This document shows positions 26 to 63,773 of a stretch of DNA of 64,000 nt, piece by piece. The stretch comes from Bigelowiella natans CCMP2755. Lineage: Eukaryota; Protista; Cercozoa. A program made the translations under genes and the position numbers. How positions within the stretch are numbered: the first letter of the stretch is position 1; every line of letters starts with the position of its first letter. Location: contig ADNK01000029.1 in the NCBI GenBank assembly GCA_000320545.1, forward strand, positions 141,057-205,056, read 5' to 3'. A model generated the notes under the pieces. The model was not told the DNA's origin. It searched no databases and saw nothing but the letters and a program-made list of their open reading frames with translations.

Positions 26-486
26 TCAGGAAATCAAAGTTGCGATCGGTTGTGCAAGTGTGACCACCTTTCGTCGTTTCTCCAGGAAAACTTGAAGAAA
101 AGCAAGGTAGTTGTTGAATCCGAGTGCTCGCATGGAATCGATGATATCGTTCCCTGTGATGGTTTTTCTATCATCCTTCGCTAACCGATCGCTGGCCTCG
201 CTTGTGATAAATCCTATGAATTCAGTTACGCATTCTTGGATGCAGTCCTTTGCTTCTTTCGCAACCTTCGCGTTCGAAGGAAGGGCTTGTTTCATGATTC
301 GACTGCAAAATTAAAAAATACAAATACAGTTTTTTAGCGGGGATTGCCATTTTACTAGAGAGTTATTGACCTTATATTCGCAATAGGGAGAAGTCGATCT
401 GGATTCGTCTGCGTTATTTGGGGGGCATTATTCGAAGAGGATGGCGCACGAGCGCCATGCTGCTGGTAGCGAAGGGGGGCTGCCAT
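26..486 (-). CDS. NFYB: Nuclear transcription factor Y subunit B (NF-YB/HAP3, histone fold); 3' end may continue off the window
   Basis: Exon 486-371 (MAAPLRY...[11 protein letters not shown]) joins via GT-AG intron 370-303 to [39 protein letters not shown]...[18 protein letters not shown], the canonical NF-YB core. Confidence 0.93.
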
Positions 487-718
487 GTCGCTTCTTCTTC
501 CGCTAGAAGATGGTTCAATTTAGGTGAGCAAGCTACTCGTTATGGTGCATGTATATACAAGAAGGTCTCCGTGCGTGAGATGAGGCGTCCACCGACACGC
601 AGGCAGGCCAAAGCAGGGAAGTAGGGTATGCCACGCGTGGAGGGGGACTGGTGGTGGGTATGAGGTTGTCTGGTGCTGTTCCCGGCTGGATTTGCCTTCT
701 ATTTTCACGAATTAAGGG

Positions 719-773
719 TTGTCGCAGGGAATAAATCGCAAATGAAATGGATCATAATTACCACCTGCGACAA
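719..773. promoter_or_regulatory. Perfect 10-bp inverted repeat TTGTCGCAGG...CCTGCGACAA in the NF-YB/TPR divergent promoter
   Basis: 719-728 and 764-773, 35-bp spacer; the motif recurs in other divergent promoters. Regulatory role is inferred. Confidence 0.45.
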
Positions 774-871
774 AGAAGAACGAACAACGGAAAGCAGCAT
801 TTTCGCCCCTCCTCCCTCCCCCTCCCTTCCTCTCTGCTTCCCTCCCTCTCCAGTGCCGTTGGAACGGAGCC

Positions 872-2618
872 ATGGAGAAGAAGGGCGTCCAAGAATTTAT
901 TAGCACTGGTGCCATACCACGAACGATGGCGACGGCTATGCCTTTGGCCTCACCAGTAAGTCCTGGCGCATCAGTTGGAGCTGACAACAACAACCCGGTT
1001 GCGAGGACAGTCGCGCTGAACAAGGTAACTGCTGCTGCTCACGGGTCTCCGCACATTGTGAAGTACGCACTCCTTTCTTGTGTGTGTAGGCAACAATGAG
1101 GAGCTTGTTCAATATCTCCAACAGAATGGCGAAGAAGGTGCGATATGATACTCCTCAAACTTGAAAAACAACCATCATGACAAACACAATATACTGTATC
1201 TACGTTTCAGACGCAGTTCCATTATCTTCTGGGGATACAATATTTACGCTTCGGACACAGCGTGTTGGTATGTGGCTCTTTCTGCAAATGTGAAAGTTGC
1301 TGGGCGTCCTCATCAAATGCATCTAACAATGATATATTCAGGCTAAGGATCATCTAAAAACGGCTTTGGATGGGTACAGCCCTGCGGCGGATATCTGCCC
1401 ACAGCAGTTTCAAAATATCACCGAGACCAAGGTGCCTGCACTCACTCTCCGGAGGGAGAGGGTGGTGCTATTAATTTTGATTTTAATTTTGATTGATATT
1501 GATTGACAGCTCTAACGATAAATGATTACACAGATGAACTTGGCGTATGCACAGTCGCTGTACGACTTTGCGGCATCCAGCCGTGTCACTGCTCCTGGTA
1601 CAGGCAGGTCGAGAATAGAGGCAGCAGGAGGATACATGGGAGGAAGCAAAGGAACAGCCCCCACAGGCTCCCCAGGCGAAAATAAACACAGGCCGCAGCA
1701 ACTTCGACCTGTAGTGAAAGTGGAAGGGAAGAGTGGAGGAATGCAGCAAACTGGGACACAGGAAGATGTGTATGAGTCAGGAGTATTTGTAGATCGGCCG
1801 GGTGCTCCTGTACCTGAGGAAGTCATCAAGAAAGCCATTGACGATGCAAAATCAGTTCTAATGGAGTTAGTCTCGGTAGCATAAACAGCTGCAGTCTTGA
1901 ACGCAATTTTCCAAAGAGTGACGAACACACCACCAATGATATGTTGCTGTCGTTGTTGCTGCTACTGCTGCTGTTTCGCACAGAATAATAGCACAAGGGC
2001 AGAATGCTGGAACCATCTCGGTCGGCTGCTATTCAATGAAAACGAACCTGCTGTGGCTAGAATGGTCCTTTGTCAATTGCCATCTTTCCCCCTCCCCACT
2101 ATGCAACTTTCACAGTGCACGAGTAACGTATACGCGAAAACCAGAGCGAGAAAGGAAGGGGGAGCGGGGGAAGGGGGAGGAAGGAAGACAAATATCGAAA
2201 AATGTATATAGACGTTCATTCTCGTACTCAGGCCTTCGAGCACATTATAAACTCTTTTCCCGGAAATGACGACCTGGACAACAATCTCGGCTTTCTTCGG
2301 ATACTCACCAATTCCCTCACAAAGGTAGGTTCGTTCATCCATTGGGCGATTTTTAAGCAAACCGGTGTTATAATTCTGATTGATACGTTCGCCATCCATG
2401 CGAAAAGAGAAGGGCACATGAGAGTTAACAATTTGTGTTGTCGTATGTCCTCTCGTGAATGAATCTGCGTAACGCTGCTGCACAGGCTAAGAAGAACTTT
2501 GAGTACATTTTGGAGAGAAATCCTACGCATATGGATGCTCTCAACAACTATGCCGCAATTCTTCTGCAGGATAACAGTAATGATGTTTCAAAGTTCCATT
2601 TCCTCTTGCTCGTCTTTT

Positions 2619-2659
<41 letters not shown>

Positions 2660-3238
2660 ACACACATTTATTTATGTGTGAATGTAAAATATAAATATGT
2701 AATATGTATACCATGCATTCTTGATGCAGTATATGTGTCTGAATGAGCGGTTTGCATATATGGTTGATCATCCAGAATTCCACGAGGCACGGATACTCCT
2801 TGGGCTCGGTTTGAAGCAGAATCAAGTGAGAAACTTTTGTTCAAAATAATCGTTGACCACTAGCAATTTTCCATCATCATCATCATCATCATCATCATCT
2901 TAACCATCATCACATCGTCGTCATTATCGTCATCGTCATCATCTTATTATTGTCAGTCTGAGCCACATATGTGGAATTCCCTGGCGATCTCGTACCTGAT
3001 GCAGCATCAACACACACAAGCAAGGAGTTGCATAGACGAAGTAAGTACCGAGCTCACTCTCGATATATGTATATATATATATATATATATATTGTGAACG
3101 ACTATTGATTCTCAGCTTTTTGCTGATGTGGTTCATAGGCGCGCAAGACCGCGAAGTTTCATACAGGGGCACAGTGGAGCATTCGGTAATAGTAATGATG
3201 ATATCATCCTTTGTGCTACTACTCTGTCCTCGATCAGT

Positions 3239-3271
<33 letters not shown>

Positions 3272-4610
3272 CATCTCTCTGCCGTAGATACGACGTTGCT
3301 GCTGTACCGTGTTAGAGGAAGAGAGAGGGAGGAGTGTGGAAAAGGAAGAACCACGAGTGATCTTATCGAAAGTGAGAAAGTAATGCGACATTGCTGTCCA
3401 ATCTGAATCAGATTCACCACTGCGAATTACCTCCTAAACGTGCTGCGATCCCGCGAAAAGTCAATAGACAGGCATGACTGCATCAAGGGAGCTCAGAATC
3501 TTCTGGAGTCGGTGTTGCAGTATGAAGAGACCTCGGACGTGCACGTTGCTCTGTCGAAGCTGTACCAAGCGAGGCGCCAGGAGCTGATGAGAGACGTCTT
3601 CATGAAGAGGAGACGGTTGCAGCAAAGGCCGAGCAGTATGTGCTCTAGTAGCTCCGATGATGAATTCAAGGAGGACAGGGCCAAAGCAGAGGCTTGGGGT
3701 CAGAAAAGGGAAGATCATCTCGTGAAGGCGGTGCAGATGGATCGCTTGAATAGACATGCGTGGAACGAGTTGGGCCTGTTGTTCTTGGAGAGGGGGGTTC
3801 TTGATAAGGCAATTACGTACTTTAAAGAGGCCGTGTACCTTGATCGGAATCAATGTGCCGTGTGGATAAATCTGGGAGTCGCTTACCATCTTGCCGGACA
3901 CCTTGAAGAGACAAAAAGGTACATCATCGTGCGTGCGTGCGTGCGCGCATATTTTAATGTCTCTTCCCATTCCTATATTATTCAGCAGCATATTAATGCG
4001 GGTATTTTCACAGTTTTATTGTTCATTTTCTTCCCCATCTTTCATAAATAAATAAATGTGGCTACATACGTACAGGGTATTAGAGAGAGCTCTGCAACTG
4101 GATCCAACATCCGTGGAGGCTCGGAACAACCTCGCAAACCTCTACAAGAAGCAAGGAGAGGTAATAATTTCCATTTATATCCCCATCCCCCAACCTTACA
4201 TGTCACTGTTCAGTTGCAAAAAGCCAAGAACGAGTACATCAAGTGCCTCAGTGATCTCAGCGCTAGCCTCAGAGTTCATAATCAAGGACTCGAACGCACT
4301 ACTCAAGCCGCTGGAATACCAATACGTCCAAAGGAGGAGCTGGAATATCAAATAGCGCAGACTCACAACAACCTTGCCCTGGTTCGACAAGTTGCTTGTA
4401 TGTATTTTTGTTGTTGTAACGACCGAAATTGTGTGCCAAATACCTCAGGTTTTCATACGAGAGGGGAACTTCAAAAGTGCTATGCAAAATCTACAAATGG
4501 CTGAGCGACATGCACCTTTGACTTGTGTCAAGAAAAACAGGGAGAAACTGAATAAGCTGATACAAGGCGAATCTGGTGGGGGAGTAGGAACAGAGAACAA
4601 AAATGGTTAA
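872..4610 (+). CDS. Multi-exon tetratricopeptide-repeat (TPR) protein
   Basis: TPR-like exons: AECWNHLGRLL, HMDALNNYAAIL, HAWNELGLLFLERGVLDKAITYFKEAVYLD, AVWINLGVAYHLAG, LERALQLDPTSVEARNNLANLYKKQG, AQTHNNLAL. Stop at 4608-4610. Exon boundaries approximate. Confidence 0.8.
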
Positions 4611-5311
4611 GCTTGAACAACACATTCATTGTGCACGTATCTAGCCAGTTCATAAGTAATGCAGACTATAAGACAATGTTGAGTAGATAGTTCCCACGAA
4701 GCGTCATGCATGTTGACAGATCGCGTCATGATGACTCAATGATGCACACACATGCATGATTCAATGCTACATGGTGCACAACATCTTGAGCATGATTTTG
4801 TTACGGTTCCTAAGAGCATAGCTAGATAGGCACGTGCTAGGTAAGAAGTCAGAGTAGCATGCTAGCATGGTCGCGCACGCTAGCACGCCTGCATCGCACA
4901 CACAGTGAAACTCTAGCTGGAATTCAGATCGAAAGAGAAATCATCTACGCGATTGAGCATAGATTCTCCTGCGCAACCAATCAGAAGCGACGCGCCAGAG
5001 ATAGTGCCAGTAGTAGTTTCTTGTTGCATGCTAGCATGCGCTGCCTAGCTGGGATCCGTCATGTTTGTAGTCCAGACAGGCTCTATAGATAGGTGGGTAC
5101 ATAGCAGCTTTCTACTAGCACGCATCTAGTATCTGTAATGTATCGCAGCGTCAGGCATGCACATAAATGGTATTAGAGCTTGCTTTGAGGTATAATGAAC
5201 AGCGAAATATTACACTACTTGTAACTCTAACTGGAAGCTACGATAGGCAAATAATTTTTGCGCAGTTTGTAAATTATTGTGAGTCGATCCTCAAAAGCCC
5301 TTTTGAATTAT

Positions 5312-5929
5312 TCACGCCTTTGAATTTCCAGCCTTGAAGGCGACACGCCATGAACGTAGATCTTCAGCGAGCTCTGATAAAATACTGAACTCAGTGCTTG
5401 TTCTAGGGTTTGATCAGTAATATTCATGGTTTCATACCAGGAGAGAGAGGTGCGTTGTGCTTCTCAAAGATGCCAATCAGCGCTTTACGAGCTTCAGTGA
5501 CAGCCTTCGGGTTCTGAAAGTAGAAAGTGGTTGAAGAGAGAGAATGAAATTTACATGTTTTATTGTATCACCGTGATCGATTCCTGCTGAGCTTGAACCT
5601 TTTTCAACATTCTGAAAAGAATTGGCTGTGAGCTAATCTATAAACATTCCCATACCTGCAGTAACTAATATTCATCCTCTTTATATATATTGCAGGAATT
5701 CTTTCTAACTATTTGTAGATTTTTTTCCCGTATCATAATCTCGGAACAAAGCCCACATAGAGTACCGACACCTTTGCATCATTTCCGCCTCATGCTGGGT
5801 GAACCATAGCTCCTCAGCAGCATGACCACGATCCTTGAAGCTATCTCCTGAAAACCTTCGCATAGCTACTGCAGGGCGGAAGGATGCGCGTTGGATTCGT
5901 GGGAGAGCGCGTAGGGCTGATCGTAACAT
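5312..5929 (-). CDS. ATPIF1: Mitochondrial F1Fo-ATPase inhibitor IF1-like small protein (4 exons)
   Basis: Arg/Ala-rich presequence MLRSALRALPRIQRASFRPAVAMRRFS, then IF1-like GDSFKDRGHAAEELWFTQHEAEMMQR. Spliced to MLKKVQAQQESIT / NPKAVTEARKALIGIFEKHNAPLSP / ELAEDLRSWRVAFKAGNSKA*. Confidence 0.7.
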
Positions 5930-8405: not shown

Positions 8406-8452
<47 letters not shown>

Positions 8453-9527
8453 CGGGGTGGTTAAGAGAAAATTAACAATTTTATCTAAATAATAAGGCAT
8501 GCAAGCCTGGCATGTTCGTCCGTGATTTTGGAAAGATAATAAGCAAACACTGCAATAAGCGCAGACTTTCTGTCGTGCGAAGGTAACTAAGATTGTCCGC
8601 ACCCATCTTCCATCGCGCTAGGAATATAGCACGCTCCTTCGTATTATCGTTAGTTTGTGATATTTTCCCCCCATCCTCTCGGGTCTCTGTGTTATATTTC
8701 ATTGAAGCATTTTTCCTTGCACACGCGCACACCTGCTGGACTAAATTCTGAGCCTTCGCTCGTCATCCATAAAAAGAATTTCCAACGACGTTTAGTGGAA
8801 GCGTGAAAATGCACGTTGTGGCAAGGAAGATGATGTTGCGCCTATTTACTGTAAACATGGGAGAGATTCTTCTGTCTCGTTATCATCCTATGGGCGGTCG
8901 GTCCCTCGCATCTTTGTTGATGATGTGTGACCTTGTGGCTTATGATCAGTTACTGCGGACATGGCATTGGGGAGATGTTCCATTGCGCACCAAACGTGCC
9001 GCACTATTCCAAGAACAAGGCCATTGGCATCTGCAAGCCGGGGATGGTGTTCACGATAGAGCCGATGATCAACATCAGTCAGTATCCAATGTCGTTAGTA
9101 GGAATTATTTACTTGTTGAAAAAGAAGAATATATGAAATTCAGAAAGATGGATGCGCTACGTGATACGAGATGATATCCTTTCGAAAGAAACGACTTTTA
9201 GATTCAGCACGTGTTCCCTGGTTATGCCCGCTGCTGCACCTAATTCGCTTTAACATTATTTATCTTCATTTTTCGATCCATAGGATCTTTTCGGGACAAA
9301 ACGTGGCCTGACGGGTGGACCTCTGTCACTGCTGATGGATTGAGATCTGCGCAATTCGAGCACACATTGCTTGTTACCGAGACTGGATGCGAGGTTGATT
9401 ACTGCATGGATGTCGTTGAGATATTATTTCCTGACTAAATGACCCATGCATCTAGGTTCTTACAGCGAGGACGAAAAATTCTGTCCCTTTTCACTGGGAA
9501 AAGGAAGAACAGAAAGCAAAGTCATAA
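6604..9527 (+). CDS. METAP1: Methionine aminopeptidase 1 with N-terminal C6H2 zinc finger
   Basis: [40 protein letters not shown] zinc finger; [81 protein letters not shown]. Stop TAA 9525-9527. Confidence 0.96.
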
Positions 9528-10457
9528 TAATTTGCTGGAGAAAAGCATTCTGTTCACTGTTGTCGCGTAATTTCATTTAGAAGCTAGGAATTTAGTTGTA
9601 TTCCATTTTTTTGTGAAATATGTTAATGAAATAACATCTGCTAGTCTGGATGGACGAGACCGCAGTGCATGTTTAGCAGATAGAATGCAATAATTAGTAT
9701 GGTTAAATGGTACCAACATCTGCTTATGACGATTCAGCTAGTCAGCTATATGCGTTTGTCGCATGCAATCGAGCTATATTTTGACTAGTCTACTAGACGC
9801 ACCGCGGCACTCTAGCACTGCTAGACTGTACAAATCATGCACATGTGCGCTATGTGCTATGTATCCGTGACGCCTAGCTAGCTAGTGGACCTTCGAAGCC
9901 GCACACGAAAACACGAAAAGGACTATATTTTTTCTGCATGATGGGCATGTTGTCTAAGGTGTAGCAAAATCGCCGCTGGCACCCGGTTTATTTGTGAGAA
10001 GCTACGGCAAAGCCTAAGGCTAAAAGCGCGCGCACTACTAGTTTAAACTGTGAAGCTGGCTGATGAATGGTACCATTGTGCATTTAGACATGGCGACGGG
10101 CGTATGGCTCGCTAGCCCTCTACATCTAGATATATGCAGCTGGCACGCTTGCTAGCTTGTACCGAATTATTTACTGCAGGCCTCCGGGACAGCCGCCGCC
10201 TACTACTACCACTCTTGCCCATTCTCCTGATACCCTTTAATGCACCAAATTGGTGCGCACGCATGTTTTCGTTGGCTAGTCATTACTTCCTTTTTCAGGC
10301 TCTTTTATTGAAGAAGGTTCTATGAACACACACTTCCTTTTAATCTGAAGATCCGAATGATTCAGTATTGCTTGCTGTATTGACGCCTTAACGCTAGATA
10401 CGGGGGAATACCAACCAAACAGTTAACAATCTTGCAGACTATTCAACTATCAAAAAG

Positions 10458-10493
<36 letters not shown>

Positions 10494-10585
10494 TTTTTCT
10501 ATCAGACAGGTAAAATACACATATGATCGAAATGCAATTAGATTACACTACATCACTTATGCCAACGGGTTACGCGTAGCTGCAA

Positions 10586-11894
10586 CTATACCTGTTTCTC
10601 CTCACTGATTGCTACGTATTCTGCATACAGACTAGCGATACGAATCTTCGCCTCCTCAAGAACGGCTTCCAAGTTAACTTTCTCAGGATTATAGCCGTTG
10701 AGAAGTCTGCTCTCTACCCACCACTCAGAAAATCCTTTTCCAAAGGCAAACCACTCTTCCCAGAGCTACATTTTTGAACAAAGGAAAGACAGCAATCAGA
10801 TAATATGTGAAACAGGAGACTTTGGGGAATATTATTTATCGCCCACCTCGCTACAGCCTGGGACGTGAGTCAACTTTCTGCATCCTTTGTAGATCCGATC
10901 CTGAATGTTGTCAATAATCAGTTTGGGGGGGGGGGGGCAGTGCATCTACTGATCTTAGCCTCCTCCTTCCTCTTCTTCTACAACAACTACGAGAAATACT
11001 ACCCTAGTTACTCCTAGCACATGATTGAGCGACTTGGAACCAATGGCTGCTTTCTTTTGATTCTTTTTTTTGGATCCAGACTTGGCTAGTAGCTTTTCTT
11101 TCGAAGGGGGAAATTCCTTGATCTCCCCTCTACGCAGAGGACCAAACAGACCTCCTTTCAAGTTTTCCCGTAAACGCCTGATGGTTAAATTCGTAATATC
11201 AGTTGAGAATTGTTCTTTCTGCAGTAGAGAGCCCCCCCTGCCAGCCCTTCAGTGCTCTCCTTCCTCTGGCGATGTAATTACCTACGGATGACGTACTCTG
11301 AAGACTTCACTTTGACTAAGCCAATAACCTGCAGGACATATAGAAGCGTTTGCATCATCATCATCATCATCATCATCATCTCCATCCCTGTTGCTCTTTT
11401 GCCTATCACCCAACTAGATTCGGATATGAACAGTCGTTATGTACGATGTCGCAAGGTAACAGATACCGCATCTGATTTCGCATCTGTGAGGTATAGAACA
11501 GCGCCTTCAGTATTGGGCATATCACGAATCTCGTTGACAACTCCCTCGAGCTCTGATTCCATATAAGTAAAATAAGTAAAACGCAAAAAGCACTAATTTT
11601 CGGCCACTTTAGGGAGGTGGTAGCAGCTAACCATATCAATACATAAATAAATAAATAAATATATATATATATATATATATACAGACTACACTCACGGATT
11701 CACATCAAACGAAGGGGAGAACGAGGAGAACGCAACCTTGAATCGTATGCTGCTTGAAATATACATGACCGATGTACTTCTTGCCGTCCAGTTTATACCC
11801 CCCCGAAGCTGCGATTGATACGGATTGGGAAAAAGTCATTTCGACGCTGCACATCCATGTCTTCACACAAATACTCGTTGGGTTTGCAACAGTC

Positions 11895-11942
<48 letters not shown>

Positions 11943-33888: not shown

Positions 33889-33984
<96 letters not shown>

Positions 33985-45910: not shown

Positions 45911-46468
45911 GAAGTTAGTTTCTACGATTACTGTCTATTCATACAGCATGTATATCTCAATATCCATATCTAGACCTGCTTAATGCAGTCATAGATCGAA
46001 AGATGGAAATGATGGATGAATCCCTGTCTTGACATTTTATCACGTTGCAAGTTCGGACGAGGCAAGTGTCCGCTAACAATGAGCTGAGCCATGCGCCGTT
46101 GGGCATGTGGTTCATGACATAGTACATGAAATAGGATATATATTGTTCTCAGTTGTACCACTGTACATGCGTGGTTGTGGCTGCGTGAACAAGAGTGGGG
46201 TCGTACCTAGCAATGCTTCATAGCTGCTACATACTAGCAATTGTACAGCAATGATTGATGCGTACGTAGCTTGGTATTTTTTCAACATGGGTGAATGATC
46301 AAACATTCATTGACATTTATTTGCCTACCATGTATGAATGTTGCTATGATGCTGTTCGATCAAACGTCGGAAGAAGATCGATGTGACTTTCATCAAACAA
46401 GTCTACACAATACTACATTTGCATTGTAAATTTGCCTCAATCCAGTTACCGGCAAAACGTTCAGTATT

Positions 46469-48106: not shown

Positions 48107-48200
<94 letters not shown>

Positions 48201-49608: not shown

Positions 49609-49875
49609 ATGGGAGACCCTCTCAGAAAGAAGAAACGCAAGAGACAATCAGGTGGGGAACTGTCCAAGGCGCAGGGGAGAGACTCAACGAGCAACAAGAA
49701 GAAAAAGAAGGCACGATGGCGGGATCGCCACCAGGCGTACGTTAATCAGGTCGCTCAGAATTTGGTCTCAAACCCAGTGCAATGATAGGAATATTCTTCA
49801 CAATAGTTTCGAAAAAGACTATGCCCCTCCTCACCACCACACACACAAGCAGACAGATACATACCAGCAGGCATT

Positions 49876-49942
<67 letters not shown>

Positions 49943-51306: not shown

Positions 51307-52118
51307 AGTTTCTGATTCCATGCTGTGAAATGACCAGCAGCAGAGCCAGCTAGCCAGAGAGCTAGAGAGGGTCACTCCATGTGGTGATCAATTGCTGAGT
51401 GTGTCACGTTTGCTCTCGACAATCATCACGGAACTGGTCCGATCTAGCAATGATGACAAAGCCCGGCCCATACCGTTCACTCGCAGCCGCATGCGCTGTG
51501 CATGAAACAAGTGCATGTCTCTCCACGTCTAGCGCATCGCAGCTGCTAGGTGTGTGAGTCTGCTGCATCAAATGACTGCGTGCTCAAGCCAGCTAGCCAG
51601 TGCCGTTCGCACCTAACCCCTAGACCCACTCATGTGCACACACACACATGCACGCACGTGACACGACTGCCTTGTCACACGCGCATCGATGCACACTGCT
51701 AGACTAGCAGCACACACTTGTGTCACGTCAGACGTGCCTGGCGGATGTCACGTGCGTAGCGTTTCTGGCTGGCTAGCTGGCGGACGGTGCAATTGAGCTG
51801 CGCAGCAGGTGTCAGGTTTCAAGGGCCAACGGTCGCTGCGTGCATTGGGGTGTGCTTCTAGATGTGCATGCACACACGCACCAGAACACACACTTGCATT
51901 GATGCAATCTGCAACAATCTGCATGCGGTGAAGGTCCAGAGGTCACAAAGATCACGCTTTACCGCAATTGAGTCATCGCACATGTGATGACCTGACAATG
52001 ATGACATACAGCATCAAGCGCACAGTGCATGTGCGATGAAGAATCATGTTTCAGAATGAAAACACAACAACAAAATTGTGATCCAATTCAAGCACGAAGA
52101 TTGAAACTTTGCATTTTG

Positions 52119-53711
52119 TTAAGGCAATTTGGAACGGATTTTTTTTGGTTCAAGAGTCTTCGTTATTTCCCTGTCAATCGGTGAAAAACTTCCCCCATTC
52201 ACGATTTCTCCATTCTGGGATACTGCTTTCGTCTATGATAAAATGTTCTTCGTTGGCGTCATCACTGAGCGAAGTATACGAATAGAAACACATGCTGAGA
52301 TGATTTATTACTTTTTGTGATGAGATAGAAGTTTATATTTACACTTCTCCCGGGCGAGGTGGCTTTAATATGTCAAAGCCCGCCTTGGCTGGAAAATAAA
52401 TACAAAAGAATCAATGTTTCCACTTCAAATTTTGATCAATTTAATGACACTCATCTCCAGGCCAGGTCCGAAACCAGTCATCATCGTCATCCTCTTCATC
52501 TGGTTTTGGCAGACATACATTTTAGTTCTTCATATTGTAAAAACTGATAATGGTCGACAACTTTCAAACTCTTCTTCACTATCTGAAAGCTCCGTTTTCA
52601 ATTCGGCAATCTGATTAGAGGAGTAAATAGAAGACAATGAGTGCAGTTTTGATTATAGTGAAGCAGGGTACATACCTCCTTAGTTATATCTGCCAAGGCT
52701 TGGTCCAACTCCATCGAGGTTTTGGCTTCTTTTGCAGCTTCTTCTGAGGCAGTCTACATAAAATTGCGATGAGCATAGGATAAATAAGCTTGTGAGAAAA
52801 TATTACCTGAGCATTAGCCGCTGCCACGTAGGAATCAGTTTTTGGATCTACGAGTCAAGAATGGCACACATCAGTTTGCGCGAAAACACAAGCATTGAAA
52901 TATTTGAAAACCGTTGATTGACTGAATGGATTCGATGTTGCTTTCCTAGGAAAATTATAGTTTAGACAAACATTTCACTTAAAGATCAAGTTTGAAGAAG
53001 ATGGTACCTCATCCACGACGAAGGAAGATGTGAGCGTCTTATACCACTCTTCGTCATCTTGATCTTAAATGCAGAATAATATGTGACACAATGGTCAAAC
53101 GGTTGAAATTTTACAACCTTTGCTAGTATCATCATCTTCGATTTCATCTTCATTCCCCGGGACAGCATCTGTGATTATATCCTCATCTGGCTCTGGTTCA
53201 TTTGGCTCCTCGATATCAAGCGATGCATCAATGTCGAGGGGCTCATCTTCCATATCTCCATCGTCCACGTCCGAGCGCACAATAAATCTAGAATTTCTCT
53301 TCCCACGTATTCCGACATTGTTTAGCATACCGTGATCCTGGATTACTATTTTATGACTCGCTACGGGATTGCTGATAGGTCACAAGATGATGTTAGAAGT
53401 AGCTCATCAGTTAAAATAATGAATAGATGTACATACCATACGCTATGAATGGTGTTCCCACAATGCCTCCCGCTCGTAAAAATTCCCTTTTCGTTCCTCA
53501 GTGAAACAAGGGGCGTTCTATGATGGCTCCGGATCACTGAACTGCGATGGGATCTTGCCACCCGCCAGTTCTCCGGTCTGTCGTGCTGGATGGAAATCAT
53601 GATCACCAGAATCACGGCCATTGGCCAGTGGCTTCGGAGATTACAGCGATGGCGCGTGCCTCTGGTACATTGCTGAACCTCCTGGATGGAGCTCGACACA
53701 ACGGATTCCAT
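52119..53711 (-). CDS. Unknown acidic protein with hydrophobic segment and Arg/His-rich transit-like region
   Basis: MESVV...HWPMAVILVIMISIQ, then HDRPENWRVARSHRSSVIRSHHR..., then D/E-rich exons (DVDDGDMEDEPLDID..., DEEDDDDW), ending ...KKIRSKLP* at 52119. Start could lie upstream (54114). Confidence 0.55.
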
Positions 53712-54859
53712 TGATATGTCTATGTGTACCCCCCTCCAGATTTCGGCGACCCGCTTTGTGTGTGAGTCGGATATGGCACCACAGGGCGTTGTCGCACGCA
53801 AAAAAGAGCAAGCAATTCACTCTCAGCGATTGCCCTTGTGAACGACTCCAATCGAAAAGCGGAAATTTCGATCCTTTTCCGTCCTTCTCCTCCTTCTCTC
53901 GATGAAAACATGCTGCGTCTTTCTCGTCCGTTAACCTCTTCCAACGAAAATGGGGAAAATCGGTCCCAATTAATTGTCGTAGGCCCAGGATGACCTCGAA
54001 CATCGTGCATTGCTGGTTTGGGTGATCAATCTTGGTCACATCATAACAAAACCCGGTCCCGCCACGGATACGCCCCTCCAGCCTCTCCGCCACCGGCCAA
54101 CATTTCGAGACCATCTCAGGCCCTTGTATGTTTTTTTATGTTTTAGTGGAGAGTGTCGTAGTTGTTGAGTGAAGAAGGGGATCATGGGATGATAGATTGG
54201 CGCAGGGAGATAAAATGCAAGGCGAGACTAGCTCGAGTGTTGGCAAGTGAATTTCGCAAACGGTCACCGAAAGCGCGTTCTGAGGGCAAGTAGAATGAAC
54301 ACAGTCTCTATCGATCTAATGTAACCTTGTACGCCAGGGAAAGCTAAGTTAGGCCGATTGGCTTTGCACAAGTAAGCCGACGGTGAGTGGATATTCATGA
54401 AGATAAGATCAACTACCTCATTCTTTCTTCTTCATCAACTTCGAAATATTCCACCAAGACAAAGTATTTTTCCGAGTATGACAGAATTATAGTAATGTCA
54501 GATGCATTAAAATTTTACAATCAGAAGGGGTTGGTATAAAACTTACAAATCCCACTGAGGGTGAGAAGAATCTACACTGCGTATGATAAGATTCTGTTCA
54601 TTCCGCAGATCACTTAAGGCGAAATACGGAATTAAGTAAGGAAACGGAGTGCCAGCTACTAGCTTTGGAGAAAGCAGCTTCAATGCTTCAAAACGAAAGG
54701 AATCAAGGGGAAGGCAAACAGTTCGAACATGATGGATCACGAAAAGTAGTATTCGTTGTAGAGCCGTCTTCTTCCTTTCACTATTAGATATTAACAACAC
54801 AAATATTCGCATAACTTATATCCACCACACCTAGATTCTTGACCAACTCGTACATTGTA

Positions 54860-56321
54860 GGGAAACGACGGAGGAAGCAGGGTGGAAGAATCTTCGCTTG
54901 AAAGTGAAGGCAAAATCGTGTTTGCAACCGCAGAGAATTACGTAGACTGCGGTGTTTACCTTGGACAAACGCTTTCGATGCACGGATTTGTGCACGAGTT
55001 CGAGACTGATTTTAAATCTGTGAAAGACAAGGTTGCAGCGTGCAACTGTCTCTACGATCTCATTCGCGACCGACAAAGGCTGCAGCAGTTGCGTGAGGAT
55101 CTAACTGTGGAAGTGACGCGAAGCCAAGGGCGGAATCGCGATATATCTCGAATTCTTGAACAGACTAAGGCTGAGCTCATAAAGGCACGCAGGCAGCATT
55201 GGATAGTTGAGGAACGTCTTAGCCTTTTGCAAAAGGAGTCACGAGCGGCAGAAAAGAAATTGAAACTTCAAATGAACAAGCTTTCAAAAGAGAACGTAAT
55301 GATCCGCAACAGGGACAAAGGCTATCAGGCCAAGATTAGGAAGATCGAACATGAGGCGGTAAGACTCAAAGACAAGCTGGATCGAGCTCAGCGCGCAAGA
55401 AAGGGATTACCAAAGGACGCCAAAATTGAGATTGTGAGTGCGGTTAAGCGTGGTAAGAAAACTTCAGGATCCAGCAACGGCGATGAACAGCTGATGAAGG
55501 AGACTCTTTCTGCGTATGAACGTAAAAATAGTGAGCTTGCCGAGGAGAATGCTCGTTTGCGAGCCGACTTTCACAGCTATCAGCAGAAGTTAGATGGGAT
55601 TCTGGACCGAAAAGTGGTGCAGATAGAATTGTCTAAATCTATGGAAGACGCACTCGCCGAGTTTAATCCCTGCATGTTCGACATGCCTTACGACATAGTT
55701 GAGAAGTATATATCCAATGGGCTGGACGCAAGGCTCCTCCAGGTACGACGACAGATGGAACTCATAGATACCAGGTCCGCGGAGATCGAAGTTGCCAATG
55801 CTGAGCAACTGGCAGAAGTCGTCAACGAGCAAAGAGCCATTTTAAAGGAAACAGACTACATCATGAGGTCGCATCTGCTATCTGGTCAGGAGAAAGGGGA
55901 ACTCCACAAGCAGCATGGAAGAAACAAGCCTAGCATGGCAGATTTAAAGTCCGTTGAATTAGAGAGAGCTGCGCTTGAGGAGCTGAAAGTGAAATATGTA
56001 AAGCATTTAGTGGAGGTGGACGAAATGAAGCTCAGTCTGAAGAAGGAACTTGCTGATCAAAATGAGATGGAAGAAGAGGAGCGCAAGAGAAAATCTGAAG
56101 ATGAAAAGTCAAAAACTTCAGAGTCGGGCGGGCTCCTCGCTTACATCAAAGACGAGGCAGAAGATGGCCAGCAAAGTGATGTACCTGACCAAGGAGTTGC
56201 AGCTGTCGAGGAGATAGCGACATTGGGTACAAGCACATTAGATCAACACGTTATGGACGAAATAGAGCGTATCCTGCAAACGGACGATTCTGACTTATTC
56301 AGCGAAATGGTCTTAAGCTAG
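54860..56321 (+). CDS. Afadin/alpha-actinin-binding (SSX2IP/Msd1/ADIP) family coiled-coil centrosomal protein; true start upstream, unresolved
   Basis: FATAENYVDCGVYLGQTLSMHGF...CNCLYDLIRDRQR...RE.L resembles the ADIP N-terminus and is followed by a long coiled coil on one long exon. Confidence 0.75.
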
Positions 56322-56547
56322 ATCAAGAAATTTATTGCTGGCATCCTATCCAGCCTCGTTAGACAGGTACTTGGAAATTTGTTAATCTGCTCTCAGTACG
56401 GTTTTGGGGAACCCTTTCGCGGCAGTTGCACATCGCAATTCTGCCACTTGCATGTACCTAGCTAGCTAGTAGCGCTGGCTGTCGACTGAATTGACATGCG
56501 TGCATGCTGTGGCCTATTAGTTGTGATGCGATGCACCTATGACTAGA

Positions 56548-56768
56548 TGAGGAGGATGTTATGAAATAATTACATTTTTTGGGCATAGCTAGATAGTCAG
56601 TCATCCTACTGTGAGACGGATGTAATGAATAAATTAAGTTTGTTCAATATTGTCACCATGATATGTAGCTGTGCAAAGCAGCGGCTACAGCGCTTATGTT
56701 GAATCTATTTGTCTTTGTTATTATGTGCTTCATGCATTCTAATGTAGCTGTGCAAAAAAGCGGCAGTG
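56548..56768 (-). repeat. Tandem cluster of two complete and one partial repeat-family copies
   Basis: GAGGATGTTATGAAATAATTACATTTTTT...GTCATCCTA, then TGAGACGGATGTAATGAA...ATGTAGCTGTGCAAAGCAGCGGCTACAGCGC, then TTCTAATGTAGCTGTGCAAAAAAGCGGCAG. Confidence 0.82.
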
Positions 56769-57460
56769 TGTCGTACGCGTCACTAATGCATGGCTACGCA
56801 GTAGAATTAATGCCATCATTGATGAGCGCTTTGCTCCTCTAGTGCTACGCTGGTATTTAGTATATGGTGCGCAGCTAGATAGCTAGCTAGCTAGACAGCT
56901 CTGCTAGAGCTTGCTGTACATATATTCGAGCATTGCTAGATTATTGTTTGACTACATGCATGCGCACTAACAGACCTACACAGCTCTAGAGCTTGTATAC
57001 CTGATACTTGCGACAGCTACCACAGCTAGATAGCTCTCGATAGCCACACATCTTAGGCACCAACAGCGCTAGAGCGCGCAGTCGCCGCAGCGTCGTGGTT
57101 TTGCATTGTTAATTGTTAATTATAATTACATGACTCTGATCGTCTATGTATTGGCACAACGTACGCACATTATTGTGTCACAATTGGCATGCATATACGC
57201 TAGTACGCGCTTAGCTAGTTAGCCTGATTGGATACGCTGCGACAAATGCAGCTCGCTATCCGCTTACTAATGGCATTCTACATGCCGCTGCATGTTCTTG
57301 TCCTTAACGCAGGAAGTTGCAGGCTACAAACTCGGCGTGGCCTATGAGAACTCACAAAACAATCGCTCGCGCACAGGATCAGCACCCTACCACCATGACC
57401 ATGAGCAGCAAGATTGAAAGCGATACTTCTAAAAGTTTATTTTCCCATAGTCTTATCTAT

Positions 57461-59798
57461 CTAGTTATTATTGACAACTTCCTTGCAACCTGGATCACCC
57501 ATAGGTCGAAGATTTGAGCACTTGTATAAGCCTAAAGAACAAATTTCAATTCGTCAGCGATGTAGAGTATTGCGCAGATATGTGCGTTACTGGAAATTGG
57601 AAATATATTAGAGCATCAATTGAATAAGAATGACGCATTCTACTCGCGTACACGTGGATTCTACGTCAGAGTAATAAACAACATGTATCGCTAAGCTAAC
57701 ATGGGAGTCACAATTTGCAAAATTTAAAATATGCTACGATTTTCTATCGCGATCTCCTGAAAAGTGCGCCCGTCACGAAAACTTAACTTTGGATCAATGT
57801 GCGGTATGTGTGTAAACCTGCAGCAATATATTTCACAAAATCTTGTTATCAACCGATCCCATACTTTTAAAAGAAAGACTCCATCGACCATATCGCCATT
57901 GAATGCCGGTGTCCACGACCGAAAATCGGTCTAACTGCATGCAGATTTCTCTCGTTTCCTCTATATAGGATTAAATTTCCACCTGAAAAAACCAATCGCC
58001 TTTGTTCAGTGGGGGAATAATAGTGTGACCTGCCTTCGGCGCAGAAAGAGAATATTACATTTCGGTCTGAGCTTTACCCTACCGAAGAACAGGTCCGAGA
58101 AAGTTGCGAAAATTTTGTCAGCCCATCTATGGAAGGAATCACATCATAGCACATTTATCAATAAATAGACCTAACCAAAAGTAATGGATCAAACCCATGG
58201 TTTGAGGAGACAGCATCGTCGATGAACATGATTTCTGCTCCAGAGAATTTATTCAACATTTCCTCCGTGTCGAGGTACAGCAGTGCACTATGTGTTCTTT
58301 CTGCAGAATAAATAAGATAACTAATTATGAAATAAAACTTAAAGAAAACGCACCGAAGTAAGAATGGCTTTGAGGAGAAGATCTCTCAGCAAAATAGTCC
58401 TTCAACTTATAAACGTGCGAATCGGCATGTAGATTTAGACCTGAGGGAACATGAGAAATGAGGATCATAGATATGCTTAATTGAAAGATGTGCAACCTCC
58501 GCTAAATAGGGAGTCAAACTGGAATAGCATTGGAAACCACCAGTGGCATAGTCCGAAAGCCTCAACGATCTGATTCCAAGTTCATATGAGATCATTTACT
58601 GAGGAAATGAGTTGCTGGCCATACTGATGGACATGAGAACGCATCCAAGTACTTTGAAATGTCCTCCCCATCTTTCACCTGAATATTGACAAAAGAATTC
58701 ACATTTAATTTGTGTTCAAATGTTTAAAAGAACGTGTGTGTGTGTGAGAAGGGCTAACCTTTTCTGTAAGATTTTGGTACAATCGATTCGAAAAACGAGC
58801 GACTAGAGAAGCACTATGCATTGACACGTTGGGCAACTTCAGGCGATCTTCAAGAAAGTCGTGAATTTTGTTTTGAAGGCTAAGAGAACGTAGAGAATTA
58901 CGATGAGAGATGTGAATAGTATGTTTAAAAGATTATTCAAACCCGAAGATCATATCGGCTATGCGCGTATCGTTTAGTTTTGGAGGACTGAGATCCGTGA
59001 ATGAAAAAACAGACCTATGTTTTGCTTGTAGGAGCTGATTTGAATGTAAACACGAGGTTGTTCAGATATAACAATTTTACTCTATATCTATATCATTCTC
59101 ATTCAAGCATGAAAAACCGGAGAATGAGGTCCGATTTCTCCATCGAGTGCCATTCGAACTCTTTCGTTCATATCCACTTCGGTATCCTCCTCTACGAGTC
59201 TGGATTTCATTTACATTTTAGAGTGAAGAAAATACTAGCAGACCATAAATTCATACTCGACTAGTCTTTCGCATGTTTCATCGTCGACGAAGTTCTCCAC
59301 AAGGACCCTTAAAATGTTACGTAAGCCACAGTTGGAAACACTCAAAAGTAGGAGGAGGTAACCTTTCTGCTGTGTTGTGGATGCTTGGATCGTACCAGTG
59401 AATCCAAAAGTTCTGGTTATAACCAGAACTTTTTCAGATATAAAAGTTAAGGATTCGTTGGATGAGAGACCTTCAGAAAAATGTCCAAAATTGCTTCAAA
59501 ATGGCAAAGCCAGTATGGAAGGCCTACACTCTCTGCCACAGGCCGTAACCATAAATCTTCATAGGAAACGGCGATATGATAGACTCTGTACATTGCATTT
59601 GAACAGGGTTTCGCCCAATCCTGATGAAGGCAAAATTTTTACTCTCTTTGTACGAATACGCTCAGCATGAAGAACCTGCAATTGGTGTTGGAGATAACGA
59701 GAATACACACTTCTATTGCCGTGGGGAGGCATTGTGCACCAGTGAAGAAACACTGCCACAATGATGACACGCACAGTCGTTGAGGACAGAATCATCAT
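57461..59798 (-). CDS. 2-oxoglutarate/Fe(II) dioxygenase (prolyl 3-hydroxylase/OGFOD3-like) with signal-peptide-like leader
   Basis: Hand-spliced exons give VLVENFVDDETCERL, LNLHADSH (HxD), RTHSALLYLD...FSGAEIMFID, GNLILYRGNERNLHAVRPIFGRGHRHSMAIW|FT (distal His, 2OG-binding Arg). Leader MMILSSTTVRVIIVAVFLHWC. Confidence 0.78.
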
Positions 59799-60109: not shown

Positions 60110-61511
60110 ATGGGCCGCGACGGACTCAACACAACAGTTTCAGATGCTGAGAGCATCCGTGGAACCAACCCACAGTTCCTCATCGAGAAGATTACACGGA
60201 TGAAGGTAAATAAACTTTCAGTGTTACCCGTTGCATGTCTCACCGCAAGCCTGACGAGAAAGAATGTTATTATATCCTTGTAAAGATATACGACGATATG
60301 TACTGGAAAGAGCACTGCTTTGCGCTCAATGCGGAAGGAATAGTGGACAAGGCCGTCGAACTGAAGTGAGCCTAGATCAGATTGCGCATTCATGAATTAC
60401 GACAAATGATAATTAACTGCGATACACAGGTATGTTGCAGGGGTCTATGGAGGAAATCGGAGACCGTCTGAGTTCATGTGCTTACTGCTCAAAATGCTTC
60501 AAATCCAGCCCGAAAGAAGTATAGTACTGGAGTTAATTGCAAACAATGACTACAAGTAAGTTCGACTACAAAGCATGCATGGGCCACAGTTTTGGCACGG
60601 GTTACTGCCTAAACACCGATTTTGTTGATTAGGTACGTTAGAGTTTTAGGAGCAACCTACCTTCGACTAACAGGAAATGCACAAGAAATCTACCAGGTAA
60701 TAATCTGCACTCGGTTGAGCTTATGTGAGATTTACACTCACTCGTCTTTCTTTCATCAGTTTCTAGAGCCTCTTCTCGTGGACTATAGGAAAATCCGATA
60801 TAGGAATGTGGAGGTGAGCGATAACTGCACGCCACTTTGATAAATTCTGCAGTGCTAGTTGCTCATAATGTGGTTATTAGGCAAAGTACGAGATGAAGCA
60901 CGTCGATGAGATCGTCGACCAGCTTCTTGTAGGAGGGTCAGCTTTTGATATTGCACTTCCACGGATACCTGTTCGATGGCACTTGGAAAAAGTTGGAAAG
61001 CTTCCTCCTCGGAAAAGCAAATTAGAGGAGATGGATTTTTTTAGTGATGACGAAGAGGGAAGCGTAGACAACGAGAAAAACGAGAAAAAAGCCTTTTTGG
61101 AGCTGGAAAAGGAGAAAACAAAGCCTGAGGCGATTGCATGGAAAAGAGAAAAGGATGATAAATCTAATGGGAAGAAAGGTAAATCGGATAGCAGGAATCG
61201 TGATAATGTCAAGAAGCGCGCCGATGATACTGGGAAACGCAGTGACGATGAAGACTCCGATGATAGCCACGACGATGATAGACGAGAGAGAAGGCGAAGG
61301 CGACGGGACCACAGTCGAGATTCATCGAGGGGCCGGAGAAGGGATCGGAGCCGTGATCGTGATAGGCGTCGAAGAAATAGATCGTCTGATTCACGCCGGC
61401 GTCGCGACAGATCTCGAAGGTATCTACTACCACCTCGTTATGAATAATTGATCCTGTGTCTCAAAAGTTCTTTTTATCAGCCGTAGTCGCGAAAGAAGAC
61501 GAAGAAGATAG
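60110..61511 (+). CDS. PRPF38A: Pre-mRNA splicing factor PRP38(A) with RS/RD-rich tail
   Basis: IRGTNPQFLIEKITRMK|IYDDMYWKEHCFALNAE, GGNRRPSEFMCLLLKMLQIQP, YKYVRVLGATYLRLTG, FLEPLLVDYRKIR, HVDEIVDQLL...DIALPRI. Stop 61509-61511. Confidence 0.96.
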
Positions 61512-61518
61512 AGACGTA

Positions 61519-61570
<52 letters not shown>

Positions 61571-62550
61571 ACGGAGAGTACTGGTTTGTCGGAGGCATAA
61601 ATGTATTGCAGAACGATCTCTAAATCTATATCCTTTGTACGTGAATTATGATCGGATCAGACACTACGTTTTGACTGTAGTGAAGCCGTAGCTTGCCCAC
61701 ACCTAGAGATATTAGATGCTCTCGCATCGAATTGTACGATGCGCAAAAAAATGAAAAAAATAATGTCTAACCACAGTATTGTCTATGCTGTCGAAGTTTG
61801 TATGCTCATAAATACTTTGCGCATCGGGTTTCCACGTGTGACATCACATGTAAGCAATGGCTATATCTTCAGATATAATGTGGACTTTGCACATGCAATG
61901 TTAGTTATCCCATGCGTGTGTAGCAGGCACATATGTATGTGTCATCATCTAACTACACACCATAGCATCCAATATCGATCGATACGGTCGCTCGCGTCTA
62001 TCAACAGCGCGCACGTAGCATCGCGTCTATACTATGACACGATGGCGGTATGCAAGCAATGTACAAATGTGCAGCGCTGCAGCAGTGTTTTGAGTGCGCG
62101 CAAGCTCACACGAAAAATCCCAGCTGCGTGCGAACATGTCTCACTTTCTCACTACGCGCTGAAGCTTTGTTCGATCAAATCGCTTTCAAAAGCTCGGCTC
62201 GCGCTTGCTCAAACACAAAATTTGTTGCAGGTTTGACCGAGCTGTGATGGCACGCAGATGGGCATTCATCATGGTCGGTATGATCGTAGCACAACATGAT
62301 CACAGGCCAGCATCGTGTGTCATGAAATCAGACGGATGCAGCGTGCACCGAATAATTGTCCGGCCTGCTAAAAGATGATACCTACTAAAACTATTATCAT
62401 TGTTTTACTAACATGCATGTGCAATCTCCCGGTCCTCCACTAGACTAATTATGAGACAGCACTTAAATAAAGCATCGCACTGCACATAATTATGTGTTAA
62501 ACAACTGTGTGCACACTTCCATCCGGAAAACGAACCTATTTGTTGTGTAT

Positions 62551-63773
62551 TTAAGCGTGGAAAAGTGAATCCTGGTTTAATTTAGCTGAAACTAAACTGA
62601 AAGCACTTTTGTTTAAAGACAAAATATTGCTGAAACCTTTAAGCTTGTGTACTTTGAACTTCGAGTTATCTAATACAGAGGACAGATATCGATGAGATGT
62701 TGCAAAGTATATTTTGTCAAGATAACTGGCGTTCGATAACTCTACATACCCTTCTTAGAACGGAATGCTCCAGACCTACAATAAGGATCAATTATAAGTA
62801 TATTTTCGTCAGAAAATCCTACGGTTAGCTGCGTACCATTGTTCAAGACGCGAGCATCTACTATACCGCGACCACGTGGACCTTAGGGATCATTGAAAGG
62901 TAAGAAATTTTCGCGATGATCGAAGTTATAAATTTAGCTCCTGACCTTCCACGTAAAATGTTGTTCTGGCAATAGCTCGGTTGTATCGGTCTCGGTACTC
63001 TTCTATTGCTACCTGCTGTCGAGCACGACGGCATTCACAGCCCTGCAGACCATCAAAAAGTATGTAAGTAATCCATCTCATTTGTGCATTCTGGTGAGAA
63101 TATGCGATTGAGAGCGCGTTTGCTGTTTAGTGTATTGCATCAAGCTACCATTTGCTGACAGTTTACGACGATAACGATGATGATGACGACGACACATACC
63201 TGTCCAAATGCATGCAGTGGAGTGCCTAGTTTTCGAGCGACAACTGGCTCGAGTTTTACTTTCCGAAACGCACTATTCGCGATATAAGATTTTTAGTTAC
63301 AGGTCCAAGTGGTACTTCTTCTTCTTCTCCTTCTTCTTCTTCTTCTTCATGTTAGGACCTATCCATCAATGCTTGTGGGCCTGCAAGCAGGTAAGATCCC
63401 AGAGATAATACAGATCCTCCCGCAAGAACAACCCACGCGCCCCAGAATACACGTGTCTTCGCTTTCTCAATCTTTAGATAAATAGGATGCAATATCAACT
63501 CTGTTTGTATAGCAGAAATAGTTTTGATCACCCTTTTGTCAAACTTCACGACTCCGGCCGGCTTTTGATGCACAGGTATCATAGAACGCGGCAACGGCCT
63601 TCAATTGATGATGATACAAGGTAAGTCCCGTAAATGAATGGGGGAAAAGCATGGTTGGGGGGTGACAATTTTTCAATATGGCCTTTGGCATTAGTTGGTC
63701 ATTACCTTTTTCTCCTCGATCCTGTTGTGAAGGTCCTTAAATTAGGGCCCTTTCGCACGAACCGAGCAGCCAT
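62551..63773 (-). CDS. TIM21: Mitochondrial inner-membrane translocase subunit Tim21-like
   Basis: Presequence MAARFVRKGPNLRTFTTGSRRKR; one TM (VFWGAWVVLAGGSVLSLGSYLL); then AFRKVKLEPVVARKLGTPLHAFGQ and RTTFYVE|GPRGRGIV. 3' end approximate. Confidence 0.75.

Follow-up and report, generated by a model that had tools for sequence, protein, structure and literature searches.

Strict strand alternation of 19 genes in a 64-kb window of the Bigelowiella natans genome: head-to-head pairs separated by tail-to-tail zones

In brown algae (Ectocarpus, FDI clade), the share of neighboring genes on opposite strands "can be greater than 60%", and divergent gaps are shorter than others (bioRxiv 10.1101/2024.02.19.579948). 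In Nannochloropsis gaditana, neighboring genes share start loci, from which they diverge, and terminate convergently; bidirectional promoters have been proposed there and one was experimentally demonstrated, and the longest alternating run comprises 15 genes (two instances) next to same-direction runs of up to 9 (PMC3566019). Bidirectional promoters of animals, plants and yeast likewise serve opposite-strand genes whose transcription starts lie within 1 kb of each other; they involve about 10% of the genes, often with related or co-expressed partners. Another similar case is a compact protist contig from an ENA metagenome (L009/L012), which encodes a calcium channel 50% identical to the one described below and alternates at 7/8 junctions among nine genes called by others. 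Two scans of metagenomes yielded nothing.

Here, a stretch of 64,000 nucleotides of the B. natans genome (contig ADNK01000029.1; referred to as the window) was analyzed. It was found to contain 19 genes in the order - + - + ... -, with alternation at 18/18 junctions. The window shares with brown algae the excess of opposite-strand neighbors and the shorter divergent gaps, but all 18 junctions alternate, 13 of these on good evidence, each tail-to-tail junction is marked by a zone of distinct composition, and the lineage (Rhizaria) is unrelated. Compared with N. gaditana, whose divergent and convergent arrangement it resembles, 19 alternating genes lie within one 64-kb window, and B. natans is intron-rich whereas N. 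gaditana is intron-poor. In contrast to the animal, plant and yeast promoters, essentially all genes of the window are paired and the partners are unrelated. The metagenomic contig differs in being intronless, its gaps measure 130-640 bp, and it includes a single tandem pair. The window alternates far more regularly than any alga whose bias is described in the literature searched.

Order and strand of the genes

A preliminary description, made without tools, had stated that all 19 genes alternate in strand. The same 19 genes were recovered (Table 1), and for 16 of them the strand is independently backed by Pfam families, solved structures, homologues, a JGI model or spliced transcript contigs. 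Within the window, the excess of opposite-strand neighbors over 50% thus extends to 18/18 adjacent pairs. The longest well-supported stretch reaches from G1 to G14 with 13 consecutive alternations, for which coin flips would give a probability of 1.2e-4. Strand evidence is weak for G15, G17 and G19; contradicting evidence was not seen. The value of 2^-18 calculated earlier for the whole order is not a valid probability, as it presumes a 50% baseline, independent junctions and right gene models. It tells that orientation is non-random and nothing more, and the coin-flip model is inappropriate, since this genome seems to follow alternation as a rule.

Table 1. Features of the window. Coordinates are CDS limits except where stated otherwise
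Feature	Positions	Strand	Evidence
G1, NF-YB/Dr1-like histone-fold gene	26..486	-	PF00808 E 3.5e-19 on 29-310
G2, TPR protein	872..4607	+	TPR_1 E 7.4e-8 on 3407-4048; 3.7-kb model
Tail-to-tail zone 1	4601..5301		4-mer model
G3, small IF1-like protein, presequence-like N-terminus	5315..5929	-	jgi/Bigna1/125699 (P0122), 4 exons, 100%
G4, methionine aminopeptidase 1 (MetAP1)	6604..~9400 (3′ limit approximate)	+	zf-C6H2 E 5.5e-11; weak Peptidase_M24 E 0.005
Tail-to-tail zone 2	9501..10301		4-mer model; right part contains G5 transcript end
G5, RNA-ligase-like gene	10007..14483 (CDS 10589-14483)	-	Homologue P0126; transcript fragment L011
G6, four-repeat voltage-gated cation (calcium) channel	15323..21762	+	Ion_trans E 8e-168
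Tail-to-tail zone 3	21701..22901		4-mer model (training zone); 83-bp repeat x2
G7, JmjC/Cupin_8 protein	~22900..24891 (3′ limit approximate)	-	Two collinear Cupin_8 exons
G8, isochorismatase-family protein	25665..26684 (3′ extension possible)	+	PF00857 E 1.1e-34
Tail-to-tail zone 4	27501..28601		4-mer model
G9, large protein	28546..34226	-	Overlapping ORFs of 304, 339, 339 codons
G10, calcium-regulated actin-bundling protein homologue	35072..36879	+	PDB 4x3n E 3.1e-25 on 35732-36022
Tail-to-tail zone 5	36901..37501		4-mer model; G11 transcript end 37375 at right edge
G11, 971-aa protein, C-terminal His_Phos_1	37375..42614 (transcript; CDS 37935-42096)	-	P0121 100%; contig L010
Head-to-head gap G11/G12	42097..42864		G11 5′-UTR with two introns occupies 42097-42614
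G12, tryptophanyl-tRNA synthetase (TrpRS)	42708..45252 (ATG 42708 or 42865)	+	PDB TrpRS matches
Tail-to-tail zone 6	45401..46501		4-mer model
G13, FAD-dependent monooxygenase	46469..49174	-	FAD_binding_3 C-terminal part E 1e-5; Rossmann N-terminal part E 2e-4
G14, RRM/RGG RNA-binding protein (moderate support)	49609..51328	+	RRM_1 E 0.034; RGG-rich ORF by eye
Tail-to-tail zone 7, TpA-erased	51301..52001		4-mer model; rho(TpA) 0.45
G15, weakly supported protein	52100..54114	-	164-codon ORF (ATG 54114) and acidic 94-codon ORF
G16, ADIP/SSX2IP-like coiled-coil protein	54590..56321	+	PF11559 E 1.3e-11
Tail-to-tail zone 8	56201..57401		4-mer model (training zone); 83-bp repeat x1
G17, probable 2OG-Fe(II) oxygenase (weakly supported)	57400..59798	-	PF03171 E 0.008 on 57870-58073
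G18, PRP38 splicing factor	60110..61447	+	PF03371 E 5e-7 and 3e-4
Tail-to-tail zone 9	61601..62501		4-mer model
G19, putative small gene	62551..63773	-	Amino-acid composition of ORF 63355-63600; right of tail-to-tail zone

For G5, the homologue P0126 (546 aa) is collinear over 14263-10616 and the transcript fragment aligns in 5 blocks at 100%. The stop codon as read in the window lies at ~10589; the transcript splices just upstream of it and extends to at least 10007. A 2204-aa homologue matches G6 along its residues 14-2190, and the Cupin_8 exons of G7 (23282-23380, 31.4 bits, and 23551-23778) are collinear on the minus strand. The identity of G12 was derived from solved TrpRS structures (N-terminal exon E 4.8e-6, C-terminal exon E 4.4e-4); in a whole-genome scan with Pfam tRNA-synt_1b, the window was not among the listed matches. 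A Pfam search of G9 gave no match, nor did family, solved-structure and paralogue searches of G15. Prolyl-hydroxylase-like exons were read by eye in G17, and further searches added no support for a 2OG oxygenase. An assignment of G19 as TIM21 (E 0.097) was dropped, as a genome scan gave no support. The donor motif AGGTA has a sense-strand bias of 66:29 over the verified genes, which is too noisy per gene for G15, G17 and G19. Also, a small unrecognised gene may be present within 26.7-27.5 kb.

Head-to-head gaps and tail-to-tail zones

The window contains nine head-to-head pairs. Their gaps are free of protein-like ORFs and measure 312 to ~850 bp from ATG to ATG, while stop-to-stop distances across tail-to-tail junctions are ~0.7-1.9 kb; divergent gaps are thus the shorter ones, in a comparison of ATG-to-ATG with stop-to-stop distances with UTRs known for G11 and partly for G5. 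The previously reported gap positions were found as described, apart from the start of G15, which is at 54114 and not at ~53711. Between G11 and G12, the gap consists mostly of 5′-UTR. The G11 transcript contig starts at 42614 (the true start being there or at a higher coordinate), which is 94 bp (ATG 42708) or 251 bp (ATG 42865) from the G12 start codon. According to this transcript, roughly 100-250 bp are left as promoter DNA, with space for only a single promoter region, and the transcription starts of the two genes lie within 1,000 bp of each other. Start sites of the other pairs should be nearer still to each other, because their ATG-to-ATG distances are below 850 bp.

For the tail-to-tail junctions, a 4-mer composition model, with zones 3 and 8 as its training set, returned exactly nine zones, one per predicted junction, with enrichment of CTAG, GCTA, CATG and TGCA. 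When checked automatically, the closest confident ORF was on the plus strand left of the zone in 8/8 cases and on the minus strand right of it in 4/4. An interpretation of the zones as mere 3′-UTRs was found to be wrong, as the G11 transcript stops at the edge of its zone. Zone 7 shows TpA erasure, the signature of a described mutator, and 10/15 of its TA dinucleotides fall within CTAG. Because most zones are without this signature, it explains zone composition only partly. The 83-bp repeat is of high copy number, with at least 1,598 candidates from a first look at the genome, and no target-site duplication could be read from the three copies. With repeat copies and TpA erasure, the zones look as much like tolerated junk as like functional DNA; they are distinct in composition and tolerate insertions.

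These observations bear on the unit proposed earlier, i.e., one bidirectional promoter plus two genes bounded by dedicated convergent spacers. The proposal is supported only in part. Head-to-head geometry, short common gaps and a distinct tail-to-tail zone agree with it; given the repeat copies and TpA erasure, dedicated spacers are no more plausible than tolerated junk. A functional explanation would be that the need for co-expression keeps pairs on one bidirectional promoter, with the zones as dedicated insulators or terminators. The short gaps, the start of the G11 transcript at most 94-251 bp from the G12 ATG and the distinct zone at every tail-to-tail junction are consistent with such units, as is the hexamer GCGACA, which is approximately threefold enriched in head-to-head gaps and occurs once 31-38 nt upstream of the G11 5′ end. 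However, the enrichment of GCGACA(A) as a promoter motif in head-to-head gaps was not significant after multiple testing. The zones carry mobile-element copies and mutational scars, as tolerated junk would. Furthermore, the claim that paired genes are functionally unrelated could be confirmed (histone-fold/TPR, MetAP1/IF1-like, RNA-ligase-like/calcium channel, JmjC/isochorismatase, His-phosphatase/TrpRS, FAD monooxygenase/RRM, ADIP/unknown, PRP38/2OG). Functional pair units are considered unlikely, although less so than the two explanations treated below.

Other parts of the genome and integrity of the gene models

Neighboring protein-coding genes of B. natans probably switch strand nearly without exception. 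Seven unrelated genome pieces of 7.5-10 kb (66 kb, poorly annotated) served as an independent sample. Right of a zone, the minus strand was found in 7/7 cases (6 independent); left of a zone, the plus strand was found in 2/4, or in 3/4 after one manual correction. In four pieces (L004, L005, L007, L008), a zone is followed by a minus gene, a plus gene and another zone. The junction at 4.8-5.5 kb of L008 alternates only if a putative 84-codon ORF is a gene. As the sample is small and poorly annotated, one might suppose a genome with only moderate bias (~60%, as in brown algae or Nannochloropsis) and a lucky run in the window. Such a local accident is very improbable: at 60-65% alternation, 18/18 has a probability of ~1e-4 to 4e-4, the genome-wide maximum run in Nannochloropsis is just 15 (PMC3566019), and the four unrelated pieces show an identical order.

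The gene models were also examined for the possibility that same-strand exons had been lumped together. The model 37461-42096, which had been doubted, is one gene, as a 3,598-nt transcript contig (L010) aligns to G11 in 17 blocks at ~100% identity. Each of G5, G6, G12 and G13 runs collinear with a single protein or a single order of domains, and ORF-free gaps in G9 never exceed ~300 bp. For B. natans, 21,708 genes averaging 2,834 bp were published for a genome of 94.7 Mb (PMC12730881). To obtain 19 strand runs in 64 kb, approximately 37 genes of 1.7 kb in random orientation would be required; because the published mean gene is 2.8 kb, merging of randomly oriented genes cannot yield this number. 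Ab initio gene finding (codon-usage, 3-periodic Markov, Viterbi exon and splice-aware models, either self-trained with 130 kb or given 12 real introns as training set) was not used as evidence: the cross-validated coding signal was just ~0.06 nat per codon, and splice-aware models fused genes into giants. An artefact of reconstruction, with alternation by construction and many real tandem pairs hidden in single "genes", could be suspected from the tool-free first reading, our freely fusing ab initio models and the long models G2 and G9 without full-length homologue, yet it is hardly credible given the single spliced transcript of G11, the end-to-end matches of G5, G6, G12 and G13, the compactness of G9, the presence of only nine 3′-type zones for 19 genes, and a run density of 3.4 kb per run in the window versus 4.4 kb per gene genome-wide.

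Possible origin and significance of the arrangement

We lean slightly towards the view that the arrangement extends over the whole 95-Mb nuclear B. natans genome, and perhaps to chlorarachniophytes generally, with more than 90% of the junctions belonging to head-to-head pairs and tail-to-tail junk zones, tandem junctions being nearly forbidden, every promoter region serving two genes, and a parity-like conservation of the layout. In such a genome, promoters would fire both ways out of a single nucleosome-free region, with genes using both directions. Tandem junctions, where the end of a gene runs into the next promoter, would be selected against in a compact and intron-rich genome. Once established, the layout may be self-maintaining. 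An inversion or translocation with both breakpoints in tail-to-tail zones would preserve alternation exactly, and a break inside a head-to-head gap would part a gene from its promoter; tail-to-tail zones would be the only dispensable DNA. Under the genome-wide reading, the parity-like conservation would arise because only rearrangements breaking in these zones survive.

The tail-to-tail zones are sites bearing traces of mobile elements and of the described TpA mutator, and the head-to-head gaps may offer compact two-way promoters for transformation work. For the annotation of chlorarachniophyte genomes, the rule would provide a strong prior, by which a same-strand neighbor flags a gene that was missed, split or merged. 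Should alternation extend to the whole genome, B. natans would represent the extreme of a bias weakly seen in some other algae, and would be a natural system to study why tandem junctions are avoided, be it because of read-through into the next promoter, inherent promoter bidirectionality or constraints on rearrangement.

Gene evidence and strand order

The source assembly of Bigelowiella natans comprises 91.4 Mb in 3,736 contigs, of which the window covers positions 141057–205056 of one contig. Its G+C content is 44%, short introns are abundant, and neither tRNA nor Rfam matches were found in the 64 kb. Ab initio gene models were useless, as the cross-validated coding signal was ~0.06 nat per codon and splice-aware models fused genes. 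Therefore, gene assignment relied on homology, tested ORF translations, and transcript contigs, and exons were searched individually against databases. The resulting order of genes (G1–G19, left to right) matches the strict strand alternation claimed in a preliminary description, with no contrary evidence; support is weak for G15, G17, and G19, three genes out of 19, to which further searches added nothing. For the calcium channel G6, the nearest named relative is from Amorphochlora amoebiformis.

Genes, tail-to-tail zones (4-mer model), and repeat copies in the window
Feature	Strand	Position	Evidence or identity
G1	-		NF-YB histone fold
G2	+		TPR
G3	-		JGI model jgi/Bigna1/125699, 100% over 4 exons
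G4	+		MetAP1
G5	-		collinear with 546-aa homologue; spliced transcript fragment L011 at 100%
G6	+		calcium channel; end-to-end coverage by 2204-aa homologue
G7	-		Cupin_8, two collinear exons
G8	+		isochorismatase
G9	-		ORFs ≤339 codons
G10	+		actin-bundling protein; PDB 4x3n, E 3e-25
G11	-	37375–42614 (transcript)	JGI protein; transcript contig L010
G12	+		TrpRS; N- and C-terminal exons matched
G13	-		FAD monooxygenase; N- and C-terminal parts matched
G14	+		RRM/RGG, moderate support
G15	-		weak
G16	+		ADIP
G17	-		weak
G18	+		PRP38
G19	-		weak
Zone 1		4.6–5.3 kb	
Zone 2		9.5–10.3 kb	
Zone 3		21.7–22.9 kb	
Zone 4		27.5–28.6 kb	
Zone 5		36.9–37.5 kb	
Zone 6		45.4–46.5 kb	
Zone 7		51.3–52.0 kb	
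Zone 8		56.2–57.4 kb	
Zone 9		61.6–62.5 kb	
~83-bp repeat, copy 1		21876–21965	
~83-bp repeat, copy 2		22240–22320	
~83-bp repeat, copy 3	reverse	56600–56690	

Single genes or merged models

Since lumping of same-strand exons creates alternation by construction, merging was the key test. The preliminary description had named the model 37461–42096 (G11) as one that might split into tandem genes, and a 613-codon ORF in it ends 400 bp ahead of the start of a His_Phos_1 domain. The stop codon of this ORF is intronic. Both parts are present in a 971-aa JGI protein, whose 3,598-nt transcript contig L010 maps onto the window as 17 blocks of ~100% identity spanning 42614 to 37375; G11 is thus one gene. 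Its transcript has two introns in the 5′UTR and one in the 3′UTR, with the shortest exons being 32–34 nt. Four of the 16 junctions were not resolved as GT-AG by the script, which may be due to small indels, strain differences, or non-canonical sites.

G5, G6, G12, and G13 are each collinear with a single protein or a single domain order, and the ORF-free gaps in G9 are all at most ~300 bp. In the transcript fragment of G5 (region 10396–10591), the final intron is removed just ahead of the genomic stop codon, so that the transcript-derived protein ends with ...EEKQR, in contrast to ...EEKQV read from the window; the 3′UTR is a separate exon (10007–10395). Random orientation combined with merging would require ~37 genes of 1.7 kb each to yield 19 strand runs in 64 kb, which is not possible given the published mean gene length of 2,834 bp (21,708 genes, 94.7 Mb; PMC12730881).

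Gaps between gene ends and between gene starts

Tail-to-tail gaps have a peculiar base composition. With two such gaps as its training set, a 4-mer model detected exactly nine zones in the window, one per tail-to-tail junction of the alternating scheme, and only four much weaker hits elsewhere (scores 12–31), two of which coincide with microsatellites. An automated check of the confident ORFs closest to the zones placed them on the plus strand to the left (8/8) and on the minus strand to the right (4/4). Seven unrelated genome pieces of 7.5–10 kb, picked regardless of content, served as a small but unbiased comparison sample. Here, the right side was minus in 7/7 cases (6 independent) and the left side plus in 2/4, or 3/4 after manual correction of a low-complexity SR-protein ORF. 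In the remaining case (in L008), alternation holds only if a candidate 84-codon ORF is a gene; if real, it restores alternation at the sole apparent exception of this sample. The ORF (5258–5512, plus strand) has two hydrophobic stretches and is flanked on one side by a minus-strand gene, whose product starts with MGSKSSK at 4754, and on the other by a tail-to-tail zone.

Stop-to-stop distances at tail-to-tail junctions are about 0.7–1.9 kb. The 3′ end of the G11 transcript falls on the right edge of the adjoining zone, and that of the G5 contig within the right-hand portion of its own. The zone core either lies between the 3′ ends or is part of the 3′UTR of the plus-strand partner. Zones hold 84 of the 177 CTAG copies of the window in 11.6% of its bases, and CpA+TpG is elevated (rho 1.44). 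The zone 51351–52001 is TpA-erased (rho(TpA) 0.45, rho(CpA+TpG) 1.83, 55% G+C), matching the signature of the TpA-directed hypermutation known for B. natans (bioRxiv 10.64898/2026.01.13.699255); 10 of its 15 surviving TA lie within CTAG, a sparing absent from that preprint (0 occurrences of CTAG). The ~83-bp repeat, with three copies in two zones, has CATTACATCCGTCTCA as its core and contains an imperfect internal palindrome. With at least 1,598 first-look candidates genome-wide and 93–98% identity among the copies listed, it resembles a young MITE-like family. In view of these copies and the erasure scar, the zones look like DNA tolerating insertions and mutational scars, and a dedicated function is putative.

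At head-to-head gaps, start codons are 312 to about 850 bp apart. The G11 transcript starts 94 bp from the first ATG of G12 and 251 bp from the second, so promoter DNA cannot exceed a few hundred bp and is necessarily shared. The motif GCGACA(A) is ~threefold enriched in these gaps (10/34 copies in 9% of bases), which is not significant after multiple testing. One copy (42642–42652) is located 31–38 nt upstream of the G11 transcript 5′ end, and the presumed head-to-head gaps of four other genome pieces (L004, L005, L007, L008) contain one each (4/4). At the second of the two candidate TrpRS starts (42865–42925), the encoded leader is signal-peptide-like by eye. Plastid-targeting leaders of chlorarachniophytes are bipartite with a signal peptide, and judged from sequence this TrpRS may be organelle-targeted.

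Possible maintenance and comparison of the alternating layout

The geometry of head-to-head pairs drawn earlier fits the observed gaps, and the gene identities bear out that paired genes are functionally unrelated; co-regulation within pairs and a single open region per gap are putative. In the favoured explanation, promoters would be used in both directions, and selection would act against tandem junctions, since there the end of one gene would run into the promoter of the following one. Such a layout could be self-maintaining: if both breaks of a rearrangement fell in tail-to-tail zones, the alternation would be kept exactly, while one breakpoint per gap class would give rise to tandem junctions and a breakpoint in a head-to-head gap would cut a gene off from its promoter.

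A very compact protist metagenome contig (ENA ERZ23491473 scaffold_2438), whose calcium channel shares 50% identity with G6, likewise alternates; it differs in being intronless and in one same-strand junction. Its nine called genes have the order - + + - + - + - +, so that 7/8 junctions alternate, with gaps of 130–640 bp. Gene orientation is unmentioned in the literature searched on Bigelowiella, Amorphochlora, and rhizarian genome architecture; the 2012 genome paper and its supplement may hold a remark. The whole genome of Nannochloropsis gaditana has no alternating run longer than 15 genes (PMC3566019), compared to 19 in this window alone. The alternation in the window can be classed as an extreme variant of a known orientation bias.
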